Origin: Paragordius varius
Lineage: Eukaryota; Animalia; Nematomorpha
Reading direction: 5' to 3'
Length of the DNA stretch: 64,000 nt
Assembly: GCA_964247055.1 (NCBI GenBank)
Contig: OZ176059.1
Coordinates: 1,240,001-1,304,000, forward strand
In this document: piece after piece, positions 2,378-39,200 of the stretch
Layout of the letters: each line of letters opens with the position of its first letter
Position numbering within the stretch: position 1 is the stretch's first letter
Notes under the pieces: generated by a model
Told to the model about the DNA's origin: nothing
Database searches by the model: none
The model's input: the letters and a program-made list of their open reading frames with translations, nothing else
Position numbers and translations under genes: made by a program

Positions 2378-4744
2378 TTCTTAATATGTGAATAGCTAAA
2401 AGATATATTATTTGTAAAGAATTTGATTTTTACTTATTATTAGTGTATTAAAATATATCTTGTAATTATAAAAAATATTTTTTATGCATATTTTAGGGTG
2501 ACAGGAAATGGTATTTTAGGTAAAACAAAATATTTTACATAAATAGTCCTATTTATTTTATGATAATTATCATTATACATTATATGAGAATTTTGAGTTT
2601 TTTGCCTTAATATATACACACGTATTATAAAAATTGACTTAATATGAAAGAGACAAAAAGACACCTCTACTTTTTCTACGCGACAAATATTTAGTTGTTT
2701 GTTTCAACAAAATTTTTATACAAACTCGTAAATACAATTATATAAAATTTAAAAAAAGATAAAAAATGAAGTCTTTGCAAACTAAAATCATGATTAGGGT
2801 ATATATTATTATATGTTTGATTCCTAGTTCAATTAATTAATTTACAAGATATAAATAGATTTTAATAAATAATTCAAATAATATATGTGTTTCATATGTG
2901 AAATTTAATCTGAATGACATTTAAATGTTTTTATTTGCACTTAACAACTAAAATCCCCTTATATTGAAACAATAGTTATTCTGCATAATTATTAATGCAT
3001 TAATTAATAGTTTAAATTGGATTAATTACTGAATTTTACCTGCTGTGTGCAAAGTCACTTAAATTTGTGTCACTTCACTCTTATATTAATAAATTATAAA
3101 ATCCATAAATAAGTTATAAAGAGAATTTACACAAATATAAAGGTTTACGGAAAAATGGATTAATTGATTATCAAAATCTTAGTTTTTATATCATTATATT
3201 ATCCAATTAAGGTACCAATCACATTTTGAATAATTGAAATATATGTAGATATATAATATACCTCTTTTGCATATTTGCCCCATTAATACAGATGTTTTGC
3301 GAGATTTCGTTGTTTTAGATTAAAATATAACTTACAAGTTGCTCTGCATGGTGCCAATACGCTTTTATATTACAACTTTTTTAACTTGTCCCTTGATTTT
3401 TGACATAAGAAACATCTTGTATCTAAAAAATTAGGTTGTGGTATTTGAAAGGCGATTTACAAAGAATTTCAAAATAATAGCTTTTATAAATATTGACACA
3501 ACGGTTGAATCATCTGCCTAAGTGTTGCAAAATGGTCTGAAAAACACGTGATATTTAATATTTTTGGCAGACGGTACTAGGAATTTTTATTAAAGAGACC
3601 CAAGAAGTTAATAATAAATAATAGAAATCAAAAGTTTTTATCAAATTGTAATAGTCCTTTCACAGGTTATCTTATTTTATTTTACATTATTTAGATATGA
3701 TAATATTCAATGATGAACACTTTTTGCTTTATTCTTTTATGTCTGTAATTTTTTCATCTTACCTGTTTTATGATATTGTCAACAAATTTGTTGGTGGTAA
3801 TGTAAGATGCTAAAATTTGACAAATTTTTCGGTTCATTTAACACGGGCAAAATATCACAACCTAATACGTAATGTCTATAATGTATATACATATTCTAAA
3901 AATGATTTAGATGTATAAAAATTTCATAAAGGTATTATAATAATTTATGCATTTGCTTATTTATCTCTCCAGCAACTAGTAATAAACGTTTTGGGTAAGA
4001 AATTAAGCTACAAATGGTATAGACAACCCAAACATATTTGTCACAAAAATGTATAATTTTTTATTTATCCATGTGTTAATGAAAAATTATAGGATATAAG
4101 AAAATGTATTAAATTGTATTTAATTTAAGTTAAAAAAACATTTTAATAACAGGTTTGTATGGTTCATTACAATTTAAAACATAAATGTCCTTTTAATTTA
4201 TATAAAGTTGAGCAATTGATAATGTCAAAAAATTAACTTTAATAAATTTTTATATACGTTTTATTTAGCGCCAATATATTCTATAGATAGTAATCTATCA
4301 ATGTAATTAGTTTATTCACTTTTTAGGATGCAAATTATTTAGGGGATTTATGCAATAAATATGTACAATCATTTTCCCACATTAAGAATAATATATAAAG
4401 TATAACTGACTCCCTGCAGTCTCTGTGCAATTATTTATTGAGTAAAAAAGTTTCCTTTTGTTAATTAATTTTTTCCAGGTGGGGCTGATTAAAAGTCCAT
4501 TTTTCTTTTTGTTCAACTTATGTACGTTTTAATTTCTGTTAAATGCAACGGAAAATCAATTATTATTGAATAATAATAAATATTAATTTATTACACATTT
4601 TCACATCTATTTTTTAATTTTAAATAATATTATCAATGATCAACAATGATTATAATATATAAATTAATAAATTTAACAACAATATAACAATAGGTTAATA
4701 TCTATACAAGTTTCATTGCAAACATTTAAATTGATCCTAGGTTG

Positions 4745-7700
4745 CTAGGTATAAACATGGGGTATGATGGGATAGGAATAATTTATTGTGTTATCGGTAT
4801 TTCTGTTAGGGTCACCATATAAATCCTTACTTATAACATTATTATTTTTATTATTAAAAATATTATTTACTGCACCTATAGATTGATCTGGATAGGGATT
4901 AAATGGATTGGATGAGTTTGGAATATTGCAATTATTATTATTATAATGATAATCACAATTTTGGCCATTAACCCATTTAGAACCGAATAAGGATGGATTG
5001 GACAGATTTGTAATACTACCAACCGAATCTCCGTAATTCTCTCCAAACGATAGCGATAATGATAATGCCTTTGTCGTTGATGACGAGTTATGAGTAGTTG
5101 AGTAATTTGAGTTAGTATTGCACGATTTTGCCAAAGACTTGTTTATTGAATTATTTGGTAAAAGATCATGTGGCGTACCTAAATAATTTTTCTTTGGCCC
5201 ATATAAGTGAGATGATATATTTTGGTTTTCGAGGAGATTTATTGTTGCTGGTGTTGAATAGGGTGGGAAAAAAGAATAAAACTTATCATCACCCGCATCA
5301 TATCGTTTGTCGTGTGTTTGAGTTATTGGAACATTTGACGAAAGATGATCAATAGCGTATGACGGTTTAAAAGTAGAACCATTACTCCAGACTGACTTTA
5401 TATTGCTGTTTGAAGGGAACTGAAAATGGCTATTGCATTTATTTAATGCATAGGGATTATTATATGCTTTGGGAGAGTTTACATCATTATTATTGAACCA
5501 TTTGAGGTGTGGAAATGTGAATTCACTTTCTTTTATCAAATGATCCCCGTAATTATAGTACTTATTATTGGGTAAATTCCATTTCTTTTCTGTATTCTCA
5601 TTGGTAGTGGCATTTAATGGATAATAATTATTATAAACATGATTATTATATTCACTATTATTATGGATCAAGTTTGGGACAGGTTGCGATCCATAGACAT
5701 TTTCCAAAGCCAATGTATTGTTTTGAATATTAATATTTATGGTGGGTGATTGGAGATTAAGCATTTGTGTGATATGGTATAAAGATGCGGTTGCGCTATT
5801 TAAAGACATAATTTTCTCATTATTAATATCATTATTATGGATATTTGGTAATTGCCGTGGAGTATGGACCAAATCATTCGATAATTTTAGATTTCCCTCA
5901 TTTGTATTATTAACTATATAATTTCTTTGTAATTTCATATATGGGTTGTATGGATAAGATTCTCTCGTTCTGGATTCATTGTTGTTGTTTGCAATAGTCA
6001 GGGCTTGATTAGATGCAATCATTGATGAGTTTGACCAAGTACCACAGTTATCCCAATAATTTGTAACTTCTTTTGACGATGTATAGGCATTTGTGGGGGA
6101 GTAATTAGTTTTATAAATATCGCCAATAGATGAAAGCGATTCCGTATTTTCACCATTTTTATACAGAGTGTTGGATTCGGTCCTAACACCACAATTTAAT
6201 TGAGTGGATGAAATTTGTGTTTTTGTTGTATTCAAATACCTGGCATCATCCATCCAGAAAGATGTGTCTGAATTGGAGTAAGTCGTTGCAGGCAATGACA
6301 TTTGTAAAATTTGATTATTTTCGGTATTGAGGGCAGTAGTATCGTTAACATTAGAGGTACCATGTATATCAATATTCATAGTATCATCTGTCATGCTCCC
6401 GTGGAGCCTCAAATGTTTACGCAAACTACTGGGGTGTGTATAAGTTTTTTCACATCCCACAACGGTACATATGTATGGTTTATCGCTTGTGTGAACATGC
6501 GAATGTTTTTTCCTATCCGAACTGTTTGCAAAACGTCGATCGCACCCCATGAATTCACAATGAAATGGTTTTTCACCTAAAAACGTTAAACATATATAAT
6601 AATGCATAAGTCAATTTTCTAAGACAAAATTCAAAATTGTCAGTCGGTTATTTTTGACATTTTTTATGACGACAAAATTCATTAGGATAAGGTTTTAAAT
6701 ACTACAATATTTCCTTGTTTTTTCTTTTGTTAATCAAAACCAATCTATTCATTATTTAGTAATTCTATCATACTATGATAATTTAAAACTTCAAAAACAC
6801 TAAAACCAGAAAAAAATATTTGATTAGCCATTAACCTGTATGTGTCCGTTTATGTATTTTCAAATTTTCGCTCCGTGCAAATCGTTTTCCACAGTAGGTG
6901 AAGGGACACATGAAAGGTTTTTCCCCCGTATGGACCCGGATATGATTAACTAGTTTATATTTTGCTTTAAAGGCCCGTCCCCTCCGACTACAATCTTTCC
7001 AATAACACCTATGTCTTTTGGCTGCCCCTACCCCCGATCCATTAACATTAGAATAATTTCCAATTATTTCACAGTTTTCAGTGATTTCGTTTCCCGAGCT
7101 CTCTTGGCCACCACATTTCTCACTTGGCATGTAATCACCATCCTTGTCGGAATTAGAATGGCTTGATGCATACGAAATTATAGCACCGCCGTCATTTGTA
7201 ACACATTGGGCTAAATGATCACACGCTATGTGATTCACGATATCATTAACATTGTAAAATTGTTTGTAGCAAAACATATACCTATATTTTGACGGTACAT
7301 GTCCCTCTGTAATATCATTAGCATCCCTAAAATGTATGGATGTATTTGGATAAGTAAAATTGTCGATTGTCGCATACATTTTGGTATTTTCAGGCCCTAT
7401 TTCATTTCTCTTGGATTCATTATTACCATTACAATTGTTATTAATGCCATCTGAAGCTGTAAAATATTCAATTAAATTGGTACATGGTTGATAGGTAGAT
7501 TCCTGTTTATTCCAAATTAGGAGTTGAGTTAACCACATACACATACGTGGTATTTCACTTGATTCAGTTACTTGCGCAGTCTCTGTATAATCCGTTATAA
7601 CGGTTGATTTCTCTTTCACAGTATTTGACTGTGATCCATTGTAACTTTCGTTAGGTCCATAATATAGCGAGGATGTTGGGCAATTAGCTGATAAATTATC

Positions 7701-8330
7701 ATTGCATTGAACATTGTAATATGAATTATTGGAAATGGAATAAGCATTTATATCATTTAGAAGATTTTGGCTTTTGCTTGCGTTTTCACTTTCTGTAAAA
7801 GAGGTTTGTTGACTCAAATAAATCGATCCTTCCTCATTAGGGTTCAACATTTGAGGGAAAAAATTTTCTTTGATCATATTTGATTGGGTTGTTTGTAATG
7901 TTTTTACTTTCTTTGTCTTTTCATACTTTTCGTTGTGCGGTACGTAATTATTGGAATTTCTTTTTCGGCGTCTTTTAACCGTAGAATTTGGGCATATATT
8001 TGTATTACTATCCGTGCAACTGTTAAAATCTACATCAGTATTTGATAGCTGAATTGTATCAGAATATTTATTATTATTATTATTGTTATTATTGCAATTA
8101 TTGATATTATAAGGATGGTTAGTATTAGCTAATATATTTAAGTTATAATCATAGTTTTCGCAAGGGATTGAGTTAATATACATATGAGAGTTTTTCATAT
8201 TTTGCGCTATATCAGAATTATGACACTCTTCATCTTTATCATATAATGATATTTGGTTTGGTAATTCGTTTTCTACTCTCGTATGACTATGTTGACCGAT
8301 ATATTTCATTGAAGTTTGAAGGGTTGTCAT
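4745..8330 (-). CDS. Zic: Zic/odd-paired family C2H2 zinc-finger transcription factor, ~1108 aa; exons 8330-6836 and 6576-4745
   Basis: Diagnostic fingers [65 protein letters not shown] 259-bp phase-1 GT-AG intron (6835-6577) splits HTG|EKP between ZF3 and ZF4, the conserved bilaterian Zic intron position. Confidence 0.96.
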
Positions 8331-14598: not shown

Positions 14599-21907
<7,309 letters not shown>

Positions 21908-25400: not shown

Positions 25401-26012
25401 ACTCTCCACCTGGTGCCATTTAACTAATATCATATCAATGGGCACACTTTCAGAGAGCACATCACTCTATTAGTTTCGATGAAGTTGATATCTGGCTTAA
25501 CCAATGGTTTGCCGCAAAATGTAATACAAAATTCATATATTACCTAAGAGATGGGCTTAAGTGATTAGAAGCCGATATACAATATTCTGAATAAAATAAA
25601 AATTTCATAAGTTAAATTACATGAAATTTACTAAAAAAATCCTCATGATTTACCTGGTATCTTATTCCACTGAGCTTACTGGAGTTACGGTTCGATTTTA
25701 ATAACAATGACATGCTGTTATTGCAATCAGACCGACAGTTTTAAAAAACTCCGCTCAATTTTATAATTAATGTTTTAATATATATGTAAACTGTTAAATA
25801 AAAAAACAATTTATTAGTGATATGTATAAAATTATTATCAGTATAATTAATTAACATTTATTGTTAACAAAATGTGATCAAATATTTGGGCAAATATTCA
25901 ATACAATAAAAATTTTAAAAAATAAAAATATACAGTTAAATTAAATTAAAAATTTGTCAAAATATATATTTTTGGGGCATTTCACAGGTATTCCAAATTT
26001 TTCCTTTTCGTT

Positions 26013-26239
26013 TTATAAGCAATCACAAACAGAACATCCTCTGTAATCGCGTTTATATCCTCGCCAGCAATTTAAACTACAAGGTATACTGGGACAATCT
26101 TAAAATACAGAAAGCTAATAAATCAATGATATAATAAAGCAATTAATTTTATTTTAAAATGATATCTGCTATTTATGAGGAATTGCAACAAGAATTTGGT
26201 TAAAAGGGTTTTCATTCGATTTTTTATTTCCCACTTTTA

Positions 26240-26278
<39 letters not shown>

Positions 26279-26582
26279 TAAAAAGAGTTTCGGGTAAAAT
26301 TTCTTATTTTAAAGATAGGGCAAAAAAATTTGCTTCAGATCCGGTTTTCATCCTTATTGGTATTATAGGTTTTTTGGTTTCAATTTTTTAAAAAGGATTT
26401 TATGTTATTTATCAAAAGTAAAAAACATAAATGTTAGAAATATAAATATTTTATGACTTACTGACTGGGATGATGTTAGCTGCCTCCATTGGTTTTTCCG
26501 CTGGGTTACCCTGTACCCCATAAAATGCAATATTAGCTGAAATTCCCAAGAAAATTAAACAGAAAAATGTAAAAACATTCAT
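26013..26582 (-). CDS. Small secreted antistasin-type cysteine-rich peptide (putative serine-protease inhibitor), 68 aa; exons 26582-26462 and 26098-26013
   Basis: Exon 1 MNVFTFFCLIFLGISANIAFYGVQGNPAEKPMEAANIIPV is signal-peptide-like and ends at a GTAAGT donor (phase 1). Exon 2 gives NCPSIPCSLNCWRGYKRDYRGCSVCDCL*, matching C-x4-C-x3-C-x2-G-Y-x2-D-x2-G-C-x2-C-x-C. Confidence 0.82.
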
Positions 26583-28663
26583 TGTGGTCAAAGGCAGAGA
26601 AATGGATATAATTAAAAACAAAGTTTAAAAACTATAATGTTGGTTTTTGAATTAAAAAGTATGCTCTTTTATACTATTTTGGTGTACATGTCAAACAAAA
26701 GCAAACGGATTTAAAAAATTGTTTCCAACTTATATTATGTCATATGAATAGGAAATTGTTTTTTTCAAGCATATACCATAAAATACCACATAATTGGCAA
26801 TTAGTTAACAAAAAAACTGGAAAATTCAATGCGCAACGCGGTTATATTTTTATCAAGTCATATTTGTTCGCAGAATTATTATATATGAGAAAATTAAAGT
26901 TGAATTTAATGTACATTATGTTTAAAACATAAGTGAATTAAATTGTCAAAATTAATTACAAATTTTCTTTTCAGGAACATAAATCATTTATTGAAATCTT
27001 GAAGGAATAAATTATGGTATGGTTAAGTATAACCAGTTTTTTGTGAATAAGATATAACGATTCCTACATAAAATTGTATTATTTTTGTATTATTAACTAT
27101 TTAAGTTTACAAATAAAATTATAATTGCATGAATGCGGACTAAAAATTTGGAAATCAAACCACAGAAATAGGAACCGTATTTGCAAAAATAATACATGCT
27201 TTAAATCATCCTTTTTTGAAATTAATTTGAATTTTAGTTCTTTTATTAAAACCGGTTGTGAAATCTTTGTAAAAACAAGCGAGAAAAAGCTTATCCGCTA
27301 TTAAAATACCATGGATTCTTAAGTATACAGTAAACCTGCAAGTTAAAAATTTTTTCGGCGCATAACAAAAATATTAATATAATTTATTAATATATATTTA
27401 CGATTCAATGTCACCCTTAAACAATTCGATACCCTTGAACAATTCAAATTCACCCTAAAATAAAATAAGTTTTGAAGATTAAAAATTACTTATAGTTTTT
27501 AAAATTTTAAGGAAACGAAATTATGTTTAAAATTAAAATAATATTGAATAGTAAATTATGCCATAGTCCCGATTTGCGACTAAATAAGTCACAAAATAAT
27601 ATAGATTTTTTTGCTAATCCTTGTGAAAGATAATTAAATTTTAACTGACTTTTACAAAAATTGAACTCTGGAATATAAAACTACCCCAAAAGGTAAAATA
27701 GGAAAAAATGAATGAAGTGAAAAATGATATGAGACCACGAATTTTGCGGATGTGGTTTCTAATAATAATAAAAAAGGAACCCAGATTGATAGGCTTTTAA
27801 CATTTGTTATCCATACCACGGTGGTTTTCGTAAAAGTGGAATCTAAACCACCATTTTTTTAAAAAATTCGGTTATGAACTATGATTAAGGATTCATTGAT
27901 AGTTTATCATTAATTATTATTATTGTCACATAGAATAGAACAAATGGCAACATTATTGACTAAAGTCTTATTTGGTATCAGCCAGCAATAATATGGCGCT
28001 TTGCTGTATATGTTATATGGCTGTAATATTGGGAAAAAATAGATATGCATACTTACTTTTTACCGACATGGTTGTTTTATCCCTAAAAACAAAATAACAC
28101 TTTACACCGCTATTCATCACAAGAATATTAAAAGGTAGTAAAAAATATTTATCTTTTCTCAATTATACCGATAAAATTTCATAGCTGTTTGACATATTTG
28201 CAGATATTAAACTCAAAAAAATACCTCATTTTTATATAAATATTCAGGGCCATCCACTGCTTTAATATATAAAATGCGTTAAATAATAATTTTATGTTAA
28301 TTTATTTTATTCATACATAATTTCTATAAAATAACCTATTACTGATAATGAAAATCGTGTATCAACAGCGCTTCAAAACTAACTAATTATCCTGATGTGC
28401 ATAATTGACGGGAGTTTAAAGGTCGAACCCTAACAAATTAATGTTAAATTATTTTTTTATATAAAAATATATATTTTTAAACAAAGGTTTTTTTGCAGAA
28501 CTATCGGATAATGACTTAAAATCATTATTTAAGTTGACAAGAGAGAATTTGCAAAAAACCTATATGTTTGATAATAAATTCTCAAAAAAGAAATTTCGAT
28601 TTTCGTCGGTTTCTTTTTCGATATTTCAACAATGATTTTGATTTTTTGGCATAGTTCAAAGCC

Positions 28664-29748: not shown

Positions 29749-32700
29749 CTATGACCATTCAATTTTTCGTTGATGTTGTTTCAATGTACTGTGTAAACGT
29801 TCATCTATCATAGATTCTGTCAATGTGCCATCCAGAGAAGCAAACAAACTTGCCTATATTAAAGAAAAAAAAATAAAAAAAATTTTTAATCAAAAATTTC
29901 TTATTTGAATGGTTACAATATATATATATATCTATATATATATATATTTATATTAATATTCCATTTAGCATATAAATTATTACAAAAAAATAAGATATTG
30001 CGTATAAAAAAAGATAAAAACGTATAAGCTAAATTTTTATAATTTTAAAAAGGCATATATTTGAATATAATGTAAAGAGTGTGATATACATAAAAATTAC
30101 CCAATTTACTATAAAAAAATACATAAATTATAATTAATATTAAAATTTGAAAAATAAAAAAAAAATAATTGGATTCGGTTTTGGCTTCACAAAACGGTTT
30201 TTAACACCAGTCCTTTAAGAGTAGAAAGCTATGTTAAGAATAAAAACTTTTTATTAAGAACTATTTAATTTTATAGGTATCTATAATTGCAATGGAAGAT
30301 AATTAACTTTCCATTGCCTTGCCACCCCCCCCTCAAAAAAGCTTAATAGTTTACTATTTGGGCGATATAAAGAGATAAAGAGAGATATTTATTAGCAAAA
30401 TAATTTTCCAAGGTAATAAAAAATTAAAATATATACATTTTAAAATATTTGTTGTAACATCTGTCAGAAAAAATTATATACCTGTAAGGAAACAATAAAT
30501 TTTGATATTTCTCGTCCAGAAAATCCGTCCATTTTGTTTGCTATCTCTTCACACTTTTTAACGTAATCAAAGTCGGCTAATTTGAGTTTCCTTTAAAAAA
30601 TTAATCATTGCGACAAATGTTGTAAGCAATTGTTTTTTGAAATTAAAAAAGTATGATGGTAAAAAATTTAATCCTCAATTTCTCACAAAAATAAATATCT
30701 ATCACACATTTTTTAAAAATATTCTAACATCGCTACTCTTCATATAAAAAAAACCAAAAAATCAAATCAAATTACAGTTTATAAAGAAAAAAACTAGGTA
30801 AAAAATCATCATTTTTGCGCACACATTTCCTTTTCCTTTAAAACTAAATATCAACACTGTGTGATCATGTATATTATTAACTATTTTTTTCGTAAAAAAA
30901 GTAATTACCGTTTTTTGCTTGCTAAACAAGTCTGTATAATATATTTATCAAAGTAGAGTAAAATCATGCGTTTTCTTTCATCCGGTCCAGGCGTATCGAA
31001 TTCTAACAATTCATCTAACCTATCATTGATGGCCCAATCAAATTGTTCGGGCGTATTACTGGCCAGAACTAACATAAATCTATACATACAAAAAAAGAAA
31101 TTGAATATTTGAATATATAATTATAATAATTGATAAAAAAATTTTTTTTACTTGTTGTGTATTTAAGTTATAGAATTTTATCATATATCTTTAAAAAATT
31201 AATAGTTTAATGCGCATGTGGTATCGTTAAAATTTTTGTTTTTTCCATAAAATAGCTACTTTTTTCAATTATTATAATTTTTGGTGTTTAAGAAGCACCA
31301 TTTTTCTAAACTAAAAATTATTTTTGAACGTGGATTATATTATAAAAATATATTTTTTTGAATAACAAGTAAGTCTAAATTTTCAGTAGTTTTAATTAGT
31401 TTCCACCGAATAACTTTGAAAACCTGATCATATAATTAAGCCTATTTTTTAGTAAATTATTAATTATAAAAACTTTAAATACAAGATAGAACTTTTCTTT
31501 CAATTAAAATGGAATTTTTAAGCAGTTTTTACACAAAATATGTAAAAATTATTAAAAAATGTAATATAAAATATATTACTTTTGGGATTGTTCTCCTGTG
31601 CGATATAGGAATGCATTGAGAGAGCTTCGGAGATCTTCACTTATAACTTCCTAAAATATATAAAATTTTATTAAATAATAATGAATTATTACGCAAAAAA
31701 TGTATTAATTATCTAAATTCGAATATTGAATTTTTTTACCTATAAAAATGTTTAATATTATGTTATTAGGGGTATTAATATTCTAAAGATTGTTAACTAA
31801 AAAAAAATTACAAAGATAATGTTGTTAATTTAATAATATTAAGGGATTTTGTGTACGCTGTAAAATTCTTTTATAAATTATTTATATTAAGTAATTATGA
31901 TTTAATTTAAATGTTGATTTTTTTCGATTATTAGTCTTTGTCGAATGTTAAAATAAAACAAAAAACTTAAAGAAAATTGATGATATATATATATATATAA
32001 AGAATAGTTTTAATATTAATAAAGAAAAAAATAACAATTTAATTAGTATCACACTACTATTTTTGATAGCCTAAAAAAATGTTTTTTAAGTATATTTCCT
32101 AATTTGGTAAAACTTTTAATTATATTTTTGTTTTACTATTAGTAATCCAAAATATATTATATATATATATATATAAAATCAATCTTTTCCTAAATTTAAG
32201 TAATTTCAATTTTTTAAAGTATATTACAATTTACCCAAAAATTTATTTGTAAACTGATTGAAAAAATTATTACTTTTGAGCGTTTTTTGAGGAATGCATC
32301 CGCTTCGTCCACAAACAAAAGTAACCTAGAAAGGATTTTCACACATAAATATTATGTAATATTGTAAATTCTTTTCTTTAAATATGTCATCTGTATGTAT
32401 ATATTAATATACATATAATTGGTTCAATTCAAAACACCTTTTTTTTCAAACAAAAGACAAAAAATGATAATATTTATTTTTTTAAAAATTAGGTTAAAGT
32501 TATCAACATTTTTGCGATATTTGTTTCTTGTTTAATATAAATACCATATATAAAAAAGTTATAACCAAATAAAAAATACTGCTTTTGTTTAAAAAAACCA
32601 TTCTTGATTCAAATTTTAAATGTTAAAAAAAGTTTTATGCAATCAACGAAAAAAATTAACCAAAATATTTTTACCCTCTGCGACTGGTTAGTGCCCAATC

Positions 32701-32801
32701 AAATAATTTATGTATGGCTGACACGCCTTGGGGGCCCATGGGAGAAACGTCACCCCCTGTCATAATGGCATAATCCATACCGGAATGTAAGGCTAAACTC
32801 T

Positions 32802-32832
<31 letters not shown>

Positions 32833-33051
32833 CATGAATCCTTTATTTTATCAAAAATTTATTTTTTTTTATTAAATGGGTATAAATATTTGGTAAAGAA
32901 TGGAAAAAACAAGAGCTTTATGGTAATGCTTATAATTTTTTGATGAATATCATATTGTTAATACCGTAAAGCTCTTGTTTTTTTCCATTCTTTACCAAAT
33001 ATTTATACCCATTTAACCAAAGAAAATAAATTTTTGATAAATTGAATACAT

Positions 33052-33082
<31 letters not shown>

Positions 33083-33213
33083 GATAGTATGCATTTTAAT
33101 GGTTCCTTATTTCACACATAATATTTGGACAATTTGCAACACAGTGTATGAAAAAAACCACAAAGTGTTAAATAAACACTTTTGTGTGAAATAAGCAATT
33201 ATTAAAATGCATA

Positions 33214-33248
<35 letters not shown>

Positions 33249-36200
33249 GGTAAATGACGGATTAATAATTTTTATATTAGCAACGATTGTCAAATCCGTG
33301 AAATAATGATATAAACGAAATCTAAACTAAAAATATAATTGAAAATGACATATATGGTACAATAAAAAATTAAACAGATAATATATTTTATTGTAATATA
33401 AATTACCATATTATAGAAACCTTAAATTTTTTTATGTAAAACTCATCATTTTTGCGTTACAAAATATGGTATAGAGATAATTAAAAAAATCCCATATATA
33501 TATATATATATATATTTCACATTTTTCTCACATAGTTTATATTAAAAAACACAACACATGAGTTCAAAAGTAAGACTGTCTTTTTTGTTAAGAAATATAT
33601 TTATATATTTATCTTTTTGTCTTTATATAAATTAAAATTTAATTTTATTGCAGATTTAATAAGAAAAGACCCAACCTTAGCAAACATAGTTTTCCCCGTC
33701 CCAGGTGGGCCATAAAACAAGAGATTACGATACAAACCTTGATTCGATTTGGTTTGACGTGTGGATATGGCAATTTCCCTCAACCGTTCTTCCAATGTAG
33801 GCTAATAAAAGTTTATGCAAAAAAACAGAATAAATATAAACTTTATTATAATTATAATTTTTTTCGGTTGTTTTAAGCTTTAGGAAAAAATATAAATAAA
33901 AAATAAATTTTTACAAGTTTGTTTCAAAAAACAACAAGATAAATGATTGAGTTGACTTCTAAAACGACAAAAATAGAGGGTTAACCCCAAAAAAATTTCT
34001 GGTAATGTTTAATAAAAAATTTTTGGGGAATATTTTTGAAAAATAAAATCAAACTTACGCTTAAAATGACACCAGATAGGGCATTTTCGGCACGCATTGT
34101 ACTCCGTTTAATATACTAAATTATAATGTAATGTATAAATTTATACCAAATTTATCTAAATAAAAAAGAATAAAATTTTCAATTTTTTCTTTACATAAAG
34201 TAAAAAATTATATATACCATTTACAGTTCAAATTCACCCTTGAACAATTTAAATTCACCCTCGAACAATTCAAATTTATTCTAAAATAAATTAAGTGTTT
34301 GTTTTTTCTAAATTAAAAATTACTATTTTTTAATATTTTTAAAATATGAAGTTCTGTTTAAAATTAATATAATGCTGAAAAAATAATAAACTATGTCGTA
34401 AAAATATATTTCTCATAAATAATGAGTTATATTATCCCGAAAACACATAATAAATTTTTAGGGTTAATTTTAATTGTTCAAAGGCGAATTTAATTGTAAA
34501 TGGTATTTCAAAGTCCTATTGACATCCACCCCGCCGCAGTGTTGACTGGGGCATGAAAATGCCTATGCCCTAACAGCAAAGGCTCGTTTCTAATGATCTG
34601 TAAAATCATTTAATGGTTGCAAACAAGGGCATGTGTACTACGTAAAAAAACGCCTCAAATTACCAAGAAGTATATATATATATATACCATTTACAATTGA
34701 AATTCACCTTTGAACAATTCAAATTCACTTTCGAACAATTCAAATTCACTCTTGAACAATTCAAATTCACCTTTGAACAATTCAAATTCATCCTTGAAAA
34801 TTGAAATTCACACTTTAAATAAATTATGTGTTTTCGGGATAACATAACTCATCATTTATATGAAATATATTTTTAGAACATAGTTTATTGTTTTTTCAGC
34901 ATTATAATAACTTTAAACAAATTTTCATATTTTAAATATATTATAAAATAAAGGTAATTTTTAATCTTAAAAACACATAATTTATTTTAGGGTGAATTTG
35001 AACTGTAAATGGTATATTATAAATATTATTTCGAGGTACGTTAACTTACTCCGAATCTAGAGTATCATCCCCCCTACCTTTATGATGATGAAATAATTCC
35101 TTTAATTATTTCAATATAATGTGTCAAATATTTTTATTAAAAAACTATTGAAATCTCCTTAAATTATTAATTAATAAGGCTAAAACAAAGTCCACCAATA
35201 AAATTTGATAGGCTAAATAATAATATATATATATACATATATAAAATTCTTTAAAAAATTGACAATATATTAAAAAAAACTCATCATGAATATAAAAAAA
35301 AGAAAAAAACCTTTATAGGATGTTTCAAAAGTTCAGTTAGGGTAAAACGAGACGTGTCACGAATCAAAGACGGTTTTCCTAACCGATCGCCAATATATTT
35401 AGCGGTAACGCTTGTACCCTGTTTAGCGGTATATGCTCCTAGAGCTATAAGTGATATACCACCGGCCTTTTTAATTAAATACAGATATGCAAATATATAG
35501 ACAAGAAAAAAATTATAAGATTTAAAGTAATTAATAAACATTCAGCTTTAAGGGTAAAAAATTTTATTTGCGTTTAAAAAAAAATGGCGTCATGAGATTT
35601 AAGTATTACCAAAAAAAAATATTAAACATAACATTTGTTTGAAAATGATATATTTTCTACAAAAAAACGCAGGAAAGTGATATATTAGGATTGTGTACAG
35701 GCAAAATTATATTCATAACATAATCAAAGCATTCCATACTCCTCTTTAGTTTTTATTAATTATTCCAATATAAAAATGTTATCACAAACACTAAAAATTG
35801 AAATTATAAGGACAAAACGTTAAAATATAAAGACAAAGATTTTTTTGTTCAAAAGACAACCATACTTTATCAAAACTTAATTCTTTTTCCAATATAAATT
35901 ATTTAATACTAGAATTGTTAAATATTTAATTGATTATGTTACCGATTCACATCTCTATTTCGTATTTTGAAATCTAACACACTGATTTATATGTAAAAAA
36001 AATAAATTTAAAAAGTATGATTATTTCTAAAAACCTTATATTTTTACGTTTTGTCCGTATAAAATCAATTTTTGGTGTAATTTCAAAAAAAAGATAGAAA
36101 CAACACAAAAAAATGGATATGATTGAAAAAATCTTTGAAAAATTAAATTTTCATTGTAAAAATTCAGTTATAACTATAATAATTTATCTTACCATGGCTA

Positions 36201-39200
36201 ATATTTTATTCCAATCCGAAAGGAAGGAATCAAATCCAGCACCCAATATACTCGTAACAGATCTATAACACAATAAAAAATAAAATTAAGGTAATAATAA
36301 ACCACAAAAAAATAAAAAAAAATTCATTCATGAGAGATTTTAGTTTTAAAATATAATGTATTTATTACATGGATGGCTCAATATATTCGTATCATGCCAT
36401 TTTTTTATAAAACAAAATAATTTTTAAAGCTATTTATTTTTAAACAGTATATATACAATAAATGATATTTAACAAATAAAAAAATTAAAAAAAACATCGT
36501 AATTAAATTATTATGTTTACATATTTTTAAAAAAAGGGCAAATAAAATTCTTAAGGGGGAATACATAATTCTTAAAGGCACTATAAAATATTAAGAAATA
36601 ATCGAAATTGTTTAAGAGTTAATTCACTTGCTTAAGGAATTTATATTCTCAGGGGGAAAATTTTATTTGTGGAAAATAGATAAAATAATAAATTGTTTAC
36701 TATTTAAATTTTATACTCTTAAAAGCAGCTTAATTCTAAAAACTTAGTAAATATAAAAAATGATAAGAGGGGTAAATTATAATTAGTTTAAAATAACAAA
36801 TTTGTTTTTAAAGGCATTTTTTAATAAATATAATTTAAAGATTAAATTTAAGACGCTTAAAAAGGTAAATAAAATTATATTTTAATCATCTATAAAAAAT
36901 TTATCTACAAGCAATCAAAAAAAATTCTAACTTAATGCATTCATCACAGTGGATCTTCAAAATTAAAGGAAGCATATTAAGATAAATTTTCACTACATAT
37001 TCCATTTTTATGTTAATACTTCGCAAAACTTTATTTTCTAAGATTTAATTTAGCATGCCATACACAATAAATGATAAATAATTTGTTAAATTTTTACTAT
37101 AAGAAACTTATGATAATACATAAAAACAAACACTAAATATCGCAATTATACGGACAAAAGACAAAAAATTTTCAAAAGACAAATATTTTTTTTGCAATAG
37201 ACAACCCCACACATAAATTTTTAAACGTTATAATATTTCCTATATTATATTATTAGGTTAGTAGTTACAATTGTGGTAAAATATGAAATAATTGATTGTG
37301 TTACCAATCTATAAATCTTTATTTCTAAAAAATAACCCATTTTTTACACGGGGTGGGCCTGAAAACTGGGGGCCTAATTCAAAAAGAGGGCGAAGCTATT
37401 GTCGGGGCATTCCTTAATGATTATATTTTTTCGATATTTGGATTTGAATGGGTGTACCGGTTTTCCGGAAACAGATTACAAAGCCAGCATTTTCCATTTT
37501 TATAATTACATAGAGTTTGCAGTTGTTTAAAAGAGTGAACGCAGCCGACTAAGACTTTGTGTGCAGCCCGCGAAAAATTTGAAAATCCATAATAATTTGC
37601 AAAATGTGCTGCGCATTAAATTTTGGTAAAATTTGTATTTTCCTTAATAAATGTTCTGATTAAATCTATCCAATTAGCAAGAATTTAAATATTGTTTGTT
37701 ATATCATGTTTTTTGCATTTATTACTACAGTTTTACGGGTACTAATAAATTATTTTTATGAATGTGCCCATATATACATATTTCGAATGCAGACAGAGTG
37801 TTGGAATGTTTAAATTAAAAATGTTACCCGCGCGCAAAACCATTCGTGTTATAAACCCATGGTTTAAAACACAAATCTTATAAATCAAGGTTTACTAAAA
37901 GTACACAATGATTGAGTCTTTTGAAAAAAAAAGCATTCTTATAAAATTAAGCAAAAAACTGAAAAAACTTATAAAATAAATGCATCATAAACTTGATTGA
38001 TTCTAGCGTAGTTATCCGCTGTTCCTGAGCCTGTAAACGTAAGCGTTCAAGGATTAAATCACGATTTTCGCGTTCAACTTTAGCCTTGGCCCGGGCTTCC
38101 ATTTCAATGCGTTCCAATTCCTTTTCATGTCGGGCCTTAAGTTCATAATCAATCGTGGCTAAAAATTAATATACCATTTACAGTTCAAATTCACCCTAAA
38201 ATAGTTTTATGTGTTTTCAAACTAATATAACTCATTATTAATATGAAATATATGCTTATGGTACAGTTTATTATTTTTTCAGTATTATTTTAATTTAAAA
38301 CAAAATTTTTATTTTTGAAAAATATATGAAATATAGGAAATTTTTAATCTCAAAAAACATATATTTTATTTAAGGGTGAATTTGAATTGTTCAAGGGTGA
38401 AATTTAATTGTAAATGGTAAATAAACTTTTTTTTATAGGTTTGTTTGACTTTTACAATAAAAACTGAAATTATACAGACGATAAAAAAAACGTAAAAATT
38501 TATAAAGACAAATCTTTTTTTTTCACGAAAGACAACACCATACTTTATCATAACTTTATTTTTTCGATATAAACTATTTAATTACAATTGTTATATATAT
38601 ATATATATATATATATAGAATTAATTGTGTCACCAATATACATATCAATTTTATAATATGCAATTTAAAACATTGAGTTATATTTTAAAAAATAAAGTTT
38701 AAAAAGTATAGTTTTCTTTTTAGAAAAAATAATTGTCTTTATATTTTTACATTTTGTCCGTATAATTCCAATATTTAATGTAATTTCTGATTGGACCTGC
38801 AGAGTTAAAAAAAGTTAAATCAATTACATTTTATTATTAAATTTTTACACAGATAATCAAAATAATCCCTTAAATAAAAAGTTTTATAACAACCGCTAAT
38901 ATAGATAATAATTATTTGTAAAATGTAAAAATTTAAAAGATTGGAAATAAAACAAATACTTTAATAAAGACCAAGAGATATGATTAGGAAAATATTGATT
39001 AAATTAAAAAAACAAACACTATTTTTTTAAAATAATGAAAAAATTGTAAACCTTACATCAGGAAATATATTGTGTAAAATTGAAAGAATTACTTACGCAT
39101 TATCAATAATTTAAATAAAAAAAGCTAATATTGTGTATGATATGAAATAAAAATTTCCAATTTTCGACAAAAAAAGTTTTTATCGAAAAAAAAAATATTT

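Follow-up and report, generated by a model that had tools for sequence, protein, structure and literature searches.

Proteins of the antistasin type are assembled from a six-cysteine unit of 25–26 residues, which is the building block of the family in the account of Holstein (1992) as cited in PMC7851590. In the complex of hirustasin with kallikrein the protease-contacting residues are P4 Val27, P3 His28, P2 Cys29, P1 Arg30, P1′ Ile31, P2′ Arg32, and P3′ Cys33, and both disulfides that anchor this loop run to the last two cysteines (PMC3014083). The single-domain leech inhibitors of MEROPS family I15 (hirustasin, bdellastasin, and guamerin) are small secreted proteins with ten cysteines in which an N-terminal two-disulfide subdomain precedes the six-Cys unit and in which P1 is Arg, Lys, or Met. 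To our knowledge, the four-Cys N-terminal subdomain, and hence a ten-Cys two-subdomain module, is found in all characterised antistasin-type inhibitors. Multi-repeat proteins, such as those of the Hydra antistasin type and those of oligochaetes and other invertebrates, are built from 2–18 units in tandem. A search of a literature library for papers on antistasin together with Nematomorpha found none.

Here we describe a locus of Paragordius varius in a window of 64 kb, by which we mean the whole stretch of DNA that was analysed. As read from its sequence, this locus is a minimal one-unit form of the known domain family. Like the leech inhibitors, its predicted product is small and secreted and carries a C-terminal six-Cys unit that can be aligned with theirs; cysteines predicted to be anchored by disulfides occupy P2 and P3′, aliphatic residues occupy P4 and P1′, and the unit contains the entire loop that would contact a protease. 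Unlike them, it has a Cys-free linker in place of the N-terminal subdomain and Ser at P1. With the multi-repeat proteins it shares the six-Cys unit, and in those proteins Ala or Ser is also common after Cys2, as is Leu or Met at P1′; however, the gene in the window has a single unit and ends one residue later.

Gene model and antistasin-type unit

The gene is encoded on the minus strand. The coding part of exon 1 (26582..26462, 121 nt) starts with the ATG at 26582, which has A at −3, and encodes a hydrophobic leader, a 15-residue Cys-free linker, and the first base of the junction codon, its 3′ end reading GTC A before the donor GTAAGT. A phase-1 GT-AG intron of 363 nt (26461..26099) with the 3′ end TTTTAAG separates it from the coding part of exon 2 (26098..26013, 86 nt), which completes the junction codon (A|AT, Asn) and continues with one antistasin unit, Leu, and the stop codon TAA (26015..26013). 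The two parts sum to 121 + 86 = 207 nt, corresponding to 68 codons and the stop. The codon directly 5′ of the exon 2 acceptor is an in-frame TAA, and the acceptor is, therefore, forced in that no other fits the frame of the domain. A sequence-only reading of this DNA had proposed a two-exon minus-strand gene with the same start codon and donor, a 363-nt gap, and matching phases; every coordinate of that model was reproduced, as were the residues it had quoted for each exon when we translated the exons separately. The exons were also searched one by one and not as a joined product. The open reading frame list had missed the gene because the open frame of exon 2 spans only 28 codons.

An alternative phase-1 donor, GTAACC, occurs after 73 nt of exon 1; it is weak, its use would remove the linker, and we judged it less likely than GTAAGT because the position of the latter agrees with the paralogues described later. 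The intron contains a (TA)n microsatellite of approximately 30 nt (26240–26272). Runs of (TA)n/(AT)n are frequent across the window and yield spurious "YIYIYI" open reading frames.

The six-Cys unit of 26 residues maps to 26019..26096 on the minus strand. In a comparison of exon 2 (26016–26096, minus strand) with the Pfam Antistasin model PF02822, which has a gathering cut-off of 21.2 bits, the match covered 26 of 26 model positions and scored 34.6 bits (E value 2.7e-8), in agreement with the antistasin-type repeat claimed earlier. The cysteine spacing C-x4-C-x3-C-x9-C-x2-C-x-C is present together with the conserved Gly-aromatic, Asp, and Gly-Cys residues, and these conserved residues sit in invariant or near-invariant columns of an alignment of 29 antistasin exons from the genome. 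Exon 2 ends with the unit, Leu, and TAA, so that the single-repeat architecture with a stop right after the domain also stands. Judged on these sequence features, the peptide very probably forms an antistasin-type knot.

We used phmmer against PDB sequences to place the reactive loop. Exon 2 aligned over its full length with the six-Cys C-terminal units of bdellastasin (1c9p), hirustasin (1hia), gigastasin (5ubm), and antistasin (1skz), with pairwise similarities that are weak (E values 0.26–8.7). In these alignments C-S-L-N-C of the window peptide is matched to C-K-V-K-C in bdellastasin, C-R-I-R-C in hirustasin, C-R-L-G-C in gigastasin, and C-R-V-H-C in antistasin. When the hirustasin register is applied to the window peptide, its loop is P4 Ile, P3 Pro, P2 Cys, P1 Ser, P1′ Leu, P2′ Asn, and P3′ Cys, and all elements of a canonical loop that can be recognised at the sequence level, that is, the Cys anchors at P2 and P3′ and hydrophobic residues at P4 and P1′, are present. 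Because the phmmer alignment can be read against the P4–P3′ residues of hirustasin (PMC3014083), the earlier assignment of Ser in C-S-L-N-C as P1 is correct, and it held in the alignments to both hirustasin and bdellastasin.

The hydrophobic core of the leader comprises residues 3–14, with a Kyte–Doolittle peak of 2.8–3.0 in a 9-residue window. Two sites are candidates for signal peptide cleavage under the −3/−1 rule, one after I-S-A (residue 16) and one after V-Q-G (residue 25). The paralogues have G-L-C-G where the window peptide has G-V-Q-G; cleavage after V-Q-G is, therefore, plausible and slightly favoured. By this heuristic, the predicted signal peptide would consist of residues 1–25 (26508..26582, minus strand) and the mature peptide plausibly of approximately 43 residues. 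The cleavage after V-Q-G proposed in the earlier reading is thus plausible as far as the paralogues go, but the I-S-A site also fits the −3/−1 rule. The only Cys encoded by exon 1 is residue 8, within the leader. With no Cys between leader and unit, the peptide lacks the ten-Cys two-subdomain module. Its net charge is weak (unit +2, linker −1), and no dibasic processing site was seen before the unit in the translation of exon 1.

A TATA-like box, TATAAAAG, is located at 26666..26673 on the minus strand, 84–91 nt upstream of the ATG. This octamer occurs at a frequency of 0.1 per kb per strand in the window, no ATG lies between it and the start codon, and TATA-like boxes are likewise present in the paralogues, 80 and 83 nt upstream of the ATG. 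A candidate poly(A) signal AATAAA is found 150 nt past the stop (25857..25862, minus strand), and the paralogues have AATAAA 76–79 nt past theirs; with 3.3 occurrences per kb per strand in the AT-rich window, this hexamer is weak evidence. Given the sequence features of the locus, we have high confidence that it is a real gene.

Relatives in the genome and in protein databases

To identify antistasin exons elsewhere in the genome, we scanned the 110.6-Mb assembly in six frames with PF02822. The scan gave 47 significant matches including the window exon, which had a genome-wide E value of 3.1e-5; at this value per genome, the match is not due to chance. When the assembly was searched at the protein level with exon 2, only two close relatives emerged, both on contig 8 (at 4800205 and 4820614). 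Each of them is 74% identical to the window unit and all other units in the genome are 50% identical or less, so that three of the 47 matches make up the subfamily. The search for paralogues that the sequence-only reading had proposed thus yielded two genes, and they match its two-exon design. Their leader exons were located by position, phase, and hydrophobicity. In both, a leader exon of 118 nt from the ATG encodes a clear hydrophobic leader with a Lys-containing n-region and a 16-residue Cys-free linker and ends with Val and 1 nt before GTAAAT (phase 1), the introns are 906 and 988 nt long, and an AG|AT acceptor before the Cys1 codon and a C-D-C-L-stop ending are found as in the window copy. 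Their units likewise score above the Pfam cut-off (38.2 and 37.1 bits). P1 is Ser in the window copy and Ser or Ala in the contig-8 copies, and all three members retain Ile or Val at P4, Cys at P2, Leu at P1′, and Cys at P3′. No third copy was found by tblastn and blastn over 44 kb around the contig-8 pair.

We then estimated substitutions in exon 2 over 27 codons by the method of Nei and Gojobori. Between the window copy and the contig-8 copies, pS is 0.80–0.82, which is saturated, and pN is 0.17–0.19; within the contig-8 pair, pS is 0.35 and pN is 0.078. Because pN is low where pS is saturated, the frame has been maintained by purifying selection since an old duplication. The ungapped nucleotide identity of exon 2 to the paralogues is 70–72%; all remaining 86-mers of the paralogue loci reach 45% at most, with a median of 28%. 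The two contig-8 genes form a tandem pair (4819588–4820697 and 4799097–4800288) in which the leader exon is 97.5% identical (pS 0.086), the intron approximately 84% identical, and the unit exon 87.2% identical with five amino acid changes including P1 (Ala vs. Ser). The better conservation of the leader than of the unit in this pair could reflect either partial gene conversion or faster change of the unit, and the numbers are small.

For structure prediction we ran AlphaFold2 on a 31-codon frame of a paralogue, which includes three intron-encoded residues, with the 29-exon alignment. The resulting model has a beta-hairpin and a moderate pLDDT of 76.4. In a Foldseek search with this paralogue model, hirustasin (1bx8) ranked second and gigastasin (5ubm) third at nonsignificant E values of about 5–6, and the superposition on hirustasin, at a nonsignificant E value, had an rmsd of 2.7 Å over 28 columns. 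VIA-align of the same model gave no Z of 2 or more. The model is compatible with the antistasin-type assignment at the strength of these nonsignificant matches.

Across the genome, 17 of 29 antistasin exons have an AG at a distance of exactly 2 nt from the Cys1 codon on its 5′ side, compared with an AG background of 3.5%, and the phase-1 intron is, therefore, family-wide. The 29 aligned exons are hypervariable at the residue that follows Cys2, yet S/A-L-N is kept in the three paralogues; this conservation suggests a shared stable target and not an arms-race locus. Other micro-genes in the genome (for example, one on contig 8 at 5840900 and the arginine-tailed ones on contig 7) resemble the window gene in that a phase-1 intron lies 2 nt ahead of Cys1, the terminal exon has one unit, and the leader exon encodes a signal peptide and an acidic linker. 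They differ from it in that their units are at most 50% identical to the window unit, with other loop residues, and in that some have long Arg/Pro/Thr-rich tails; among the genome micro-genes, only the three-gene subfamily has the S/A-L-N loop and the C-D-C-L ending. The one-unit micro-gene on the plus strand of contig 8 (unit 5840900–5840977, locus L011:48-1578) has two exons, with a signal-peptide leader, an acidic linker (net charge about −6), a phase-1 GTAAGT donor, a 1321-nt intron, a strongly cationic unit (net charge about +5), and a stop two codons after the unit, and a sister unit (L012) is found 5 kb away. The arrangement of an acidic pro-piece and a cationic knot is reminiscent of defensin-type precursors.

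We searched 1.84 billion representative proteins with a profile built from the units of the three subfamily members (E value 0.001 or less). This search identified 131 significant proteins, almost all of which are multi-unit antistasin-like proteins or fragments. None of the 131 relatives among the 1.84 billion representatives is a one-unit peptide of approximately 67 residues and none has the loop-plus-ending signature of the subfamily, in a search in which one-unit proteins with less than approximately 65% identity fall below the threshold and unannotated micro-genes are absent from the library. In 350 units of these relatives the residue after Cys2 is R in 51, A in 49, D in 46, M in 39, E in 29, T in 28, and S in 27, and P1′ is Met, Leu, or Ile in 77%. 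With S and A in 27 and 49 of the 350 units, respectively, Ser or Ala at P1 is ordinary in the wider family. The P1 Ser that the earlier reading had called unusual is, on these sequence comparisons, unusual only against the leech anticoagulant-type inhibitors: the description stands for the characterised leech proteins but not for the wider family. Asp or Glu is found at the P1 position in many units, both in the genome and among the database relatives.

Proposed function and alternative readings

In the reading that we prefer, the locus is a separate and intact gene of two exons that encodes a secreted pre-peptide of 68 residues acting as a protease inhibitor, and taken as a whole we consider this reading evenly balanced. 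The product is predicted to comprise a signal peptide, a short, slightly acidic Cys-free linker, one 26-residue unit with three disulfides, and Leu. After export, the disulfides would pair Cys1–Cys4, Cys2–Cys5, and Cys3–Cys6 by analogy with hirustasin, the loop between Cys2 and Cys3 would then be displayed as a canonical substrate-like binding loop, and the peptide would act as a tight-binding, standard-mechanism serine protease inhibitor. A unit that stands alone is plausible as an inhibitor because the P4–P3′ contacts of hirustasin and both disulfide anchors lie inside the unit (PMC3014083). The assignment of the peptide as a putative protease inhibitor, considered by itself, falls just short of an even chance.

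With a small residue at P1 (Ser in the window peptide, Ser or Ala in its paralogues) and aliphatic residues at P1′ and P4, the loop would suit an elastase-like or subtilisin-like protease better than a trypsin-like protease. This specificity is tentative and follows the pattern of the TIL-type inhibitors BmSPI38/39, in which small P1 residues (Gly, Ala, Ser, and Thr) go with inhibition of subtilisin and elastase and Arg or Lys with inhibition of trypsin (PMC10004685); by this analogy, the elastase-like or subtilisin-like class is a possible but rather doubtful assignment.

Several observations count against inhibition: the window peptide has no counterpart of the N-terminal four-Cys subdomain that known inhibitors carry, the loop is conserved among the paralogues at a position that is hypervariable in the rest of the genome family, and the paralogue model is of moderate confidence and without a significant structural match. 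We give appreciable, though clearly minority, weight to the reading that the gene is real and its product secreted, but that this single cysteine knot has no inhibitory role. The scaffold would then serve as a stable module for binding or structure, perhaps as a component of matrix, cuticle, or egg coat, as a ligand, or as a defensin-like or toxin-like peptide freed from an acidic pro-piece. The missing subdomain also speaks for such a role, and antistasin-like units are found in noninhibitory contexts, namely a leech cocoon protein and signalling proteins (PMC7851590). Because Asp and Glu at P1 are poor for classical inhibition, the many units that have them may be noninhibitory as well, and in the contig-8 micro-gene at 5840900 the linker is strongly acidic and the unit strongly cationic. 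On the other hand, the aliphatic P4, the P2 Cys, the aliphatic P1′, and the P3′ Cys are all kept in the three paralogues, the window peptide is only weakly charged, and in the exon 1 translation no dibasic site precedes the unit.

It is improbable that the window copy, which lies on contig 10, is an intact-looking but silent or dying gene and that the two contig-8 genes are the working members. Its leader exon is just 26% identical to those of the paralogues, a word search with exon 1 for homologous proteins gave no match, and a search of its own genome with exon 1 returned only itself. However, the frame is open, with an undamaged start, donor, acceptor, and stop, the six cysteines and the Gly/Asp/Gly core have been kept at the saturated pS and low pN given above, and the TATA-like box is at the distance typical of the family.

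The locus provides a natural test case for whether a lone 26-residue antistasin unit suffices as an inhibitor scaffold, and, should the organism be a parasitoid worm, peptides of this type would be candidates for action against host or microbial proteases. Taken by itself, the peptide is one further small member of a well-known inhibitor-type domain family. A broader proposal, which we consider unlikely, is that the one-unit genes including the S/A-L-N trio are lineage-specific secreted effectors of a parasitic worm based on minimal 26-residue knots that would need no N-terminal subdomain to function. Were this true, the targets would be host or microbial proteases that are not of the trypsin type, or the role would be a noninhibitory interaction with the host, and the smallest functional antistasin scaffold would thereby be defined. 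A class of tiny two-exon genes for secreted peptides escapes standard open reading frame and gene finders in this AT-rich animal genome.

Flanking genes and other observations

The upstream neighbor on the minus strand is an ATAD3-like AAA ATPase gene (29750–38120) with many short exons, including a Walker A exon at 33601–33795 and a last exon at 29853–29752 that has its own stop 3.2 kb upstream of the micro-gene. The left neighbor on the plus strand is a DnaJ gene (A3/Tid1-like, 16000–21907) with a zinc-finger exon at 18410–18556, an exon for the C-terminal domain at 20065–20247, and an Asn/Ser-rich tail that ends at 21907. These flanking genes are separate from the micro-gene. The sequence-only reading had named the lack of an antistasin HMM match, which the Pfam result above rules out, and membership of these exons in a larger gene among the findings that would overturn it, and although many antistasin exons in the genome are internal to multi-unit genes with phase-1 donors directly after the unit, it is highly improbable that the two exons belong to the 3′ end of the ATAD3-like gene, whose 3′ exons and stop are mapped, or to a multidomain antistasin protein, because exon 1 has its own ATG and hydrophobic leader downstream of its own TATA-like box, a stop follows one codon past the unit here and in both paralogues, and no second antistasin motif was found within the 64-kb window.

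Elsewhere in the window, a Zic-type zinc-finger gene on the minus strand (4745–8330) has two long open exons of 620 and 499 codons with extensive Asn-rich low-complexity sequence, and a retrotransposon integrase is encoded in two adjacent open reading frames of 149 and 263 codons on the plus strand (92–1345), in the region with the highest GC content of the window (0.38).

Outside the window, the mitochondrial contig 44 encodes a COX1 with six TGA codons. Around COX1 (locus L034:53-314, 773-1472, 4064-4257) we found perfect zero-loop hairpins with arms of 131 nt and 97 nt, and just upstream of the gene a tandem array of palindromic units of approximately 72 nt. Hairpin-enriched mitochondrial DNA has been reported in hairworms (PMC10380579), and the hairpins of contig 44 resemble those of such genomes.
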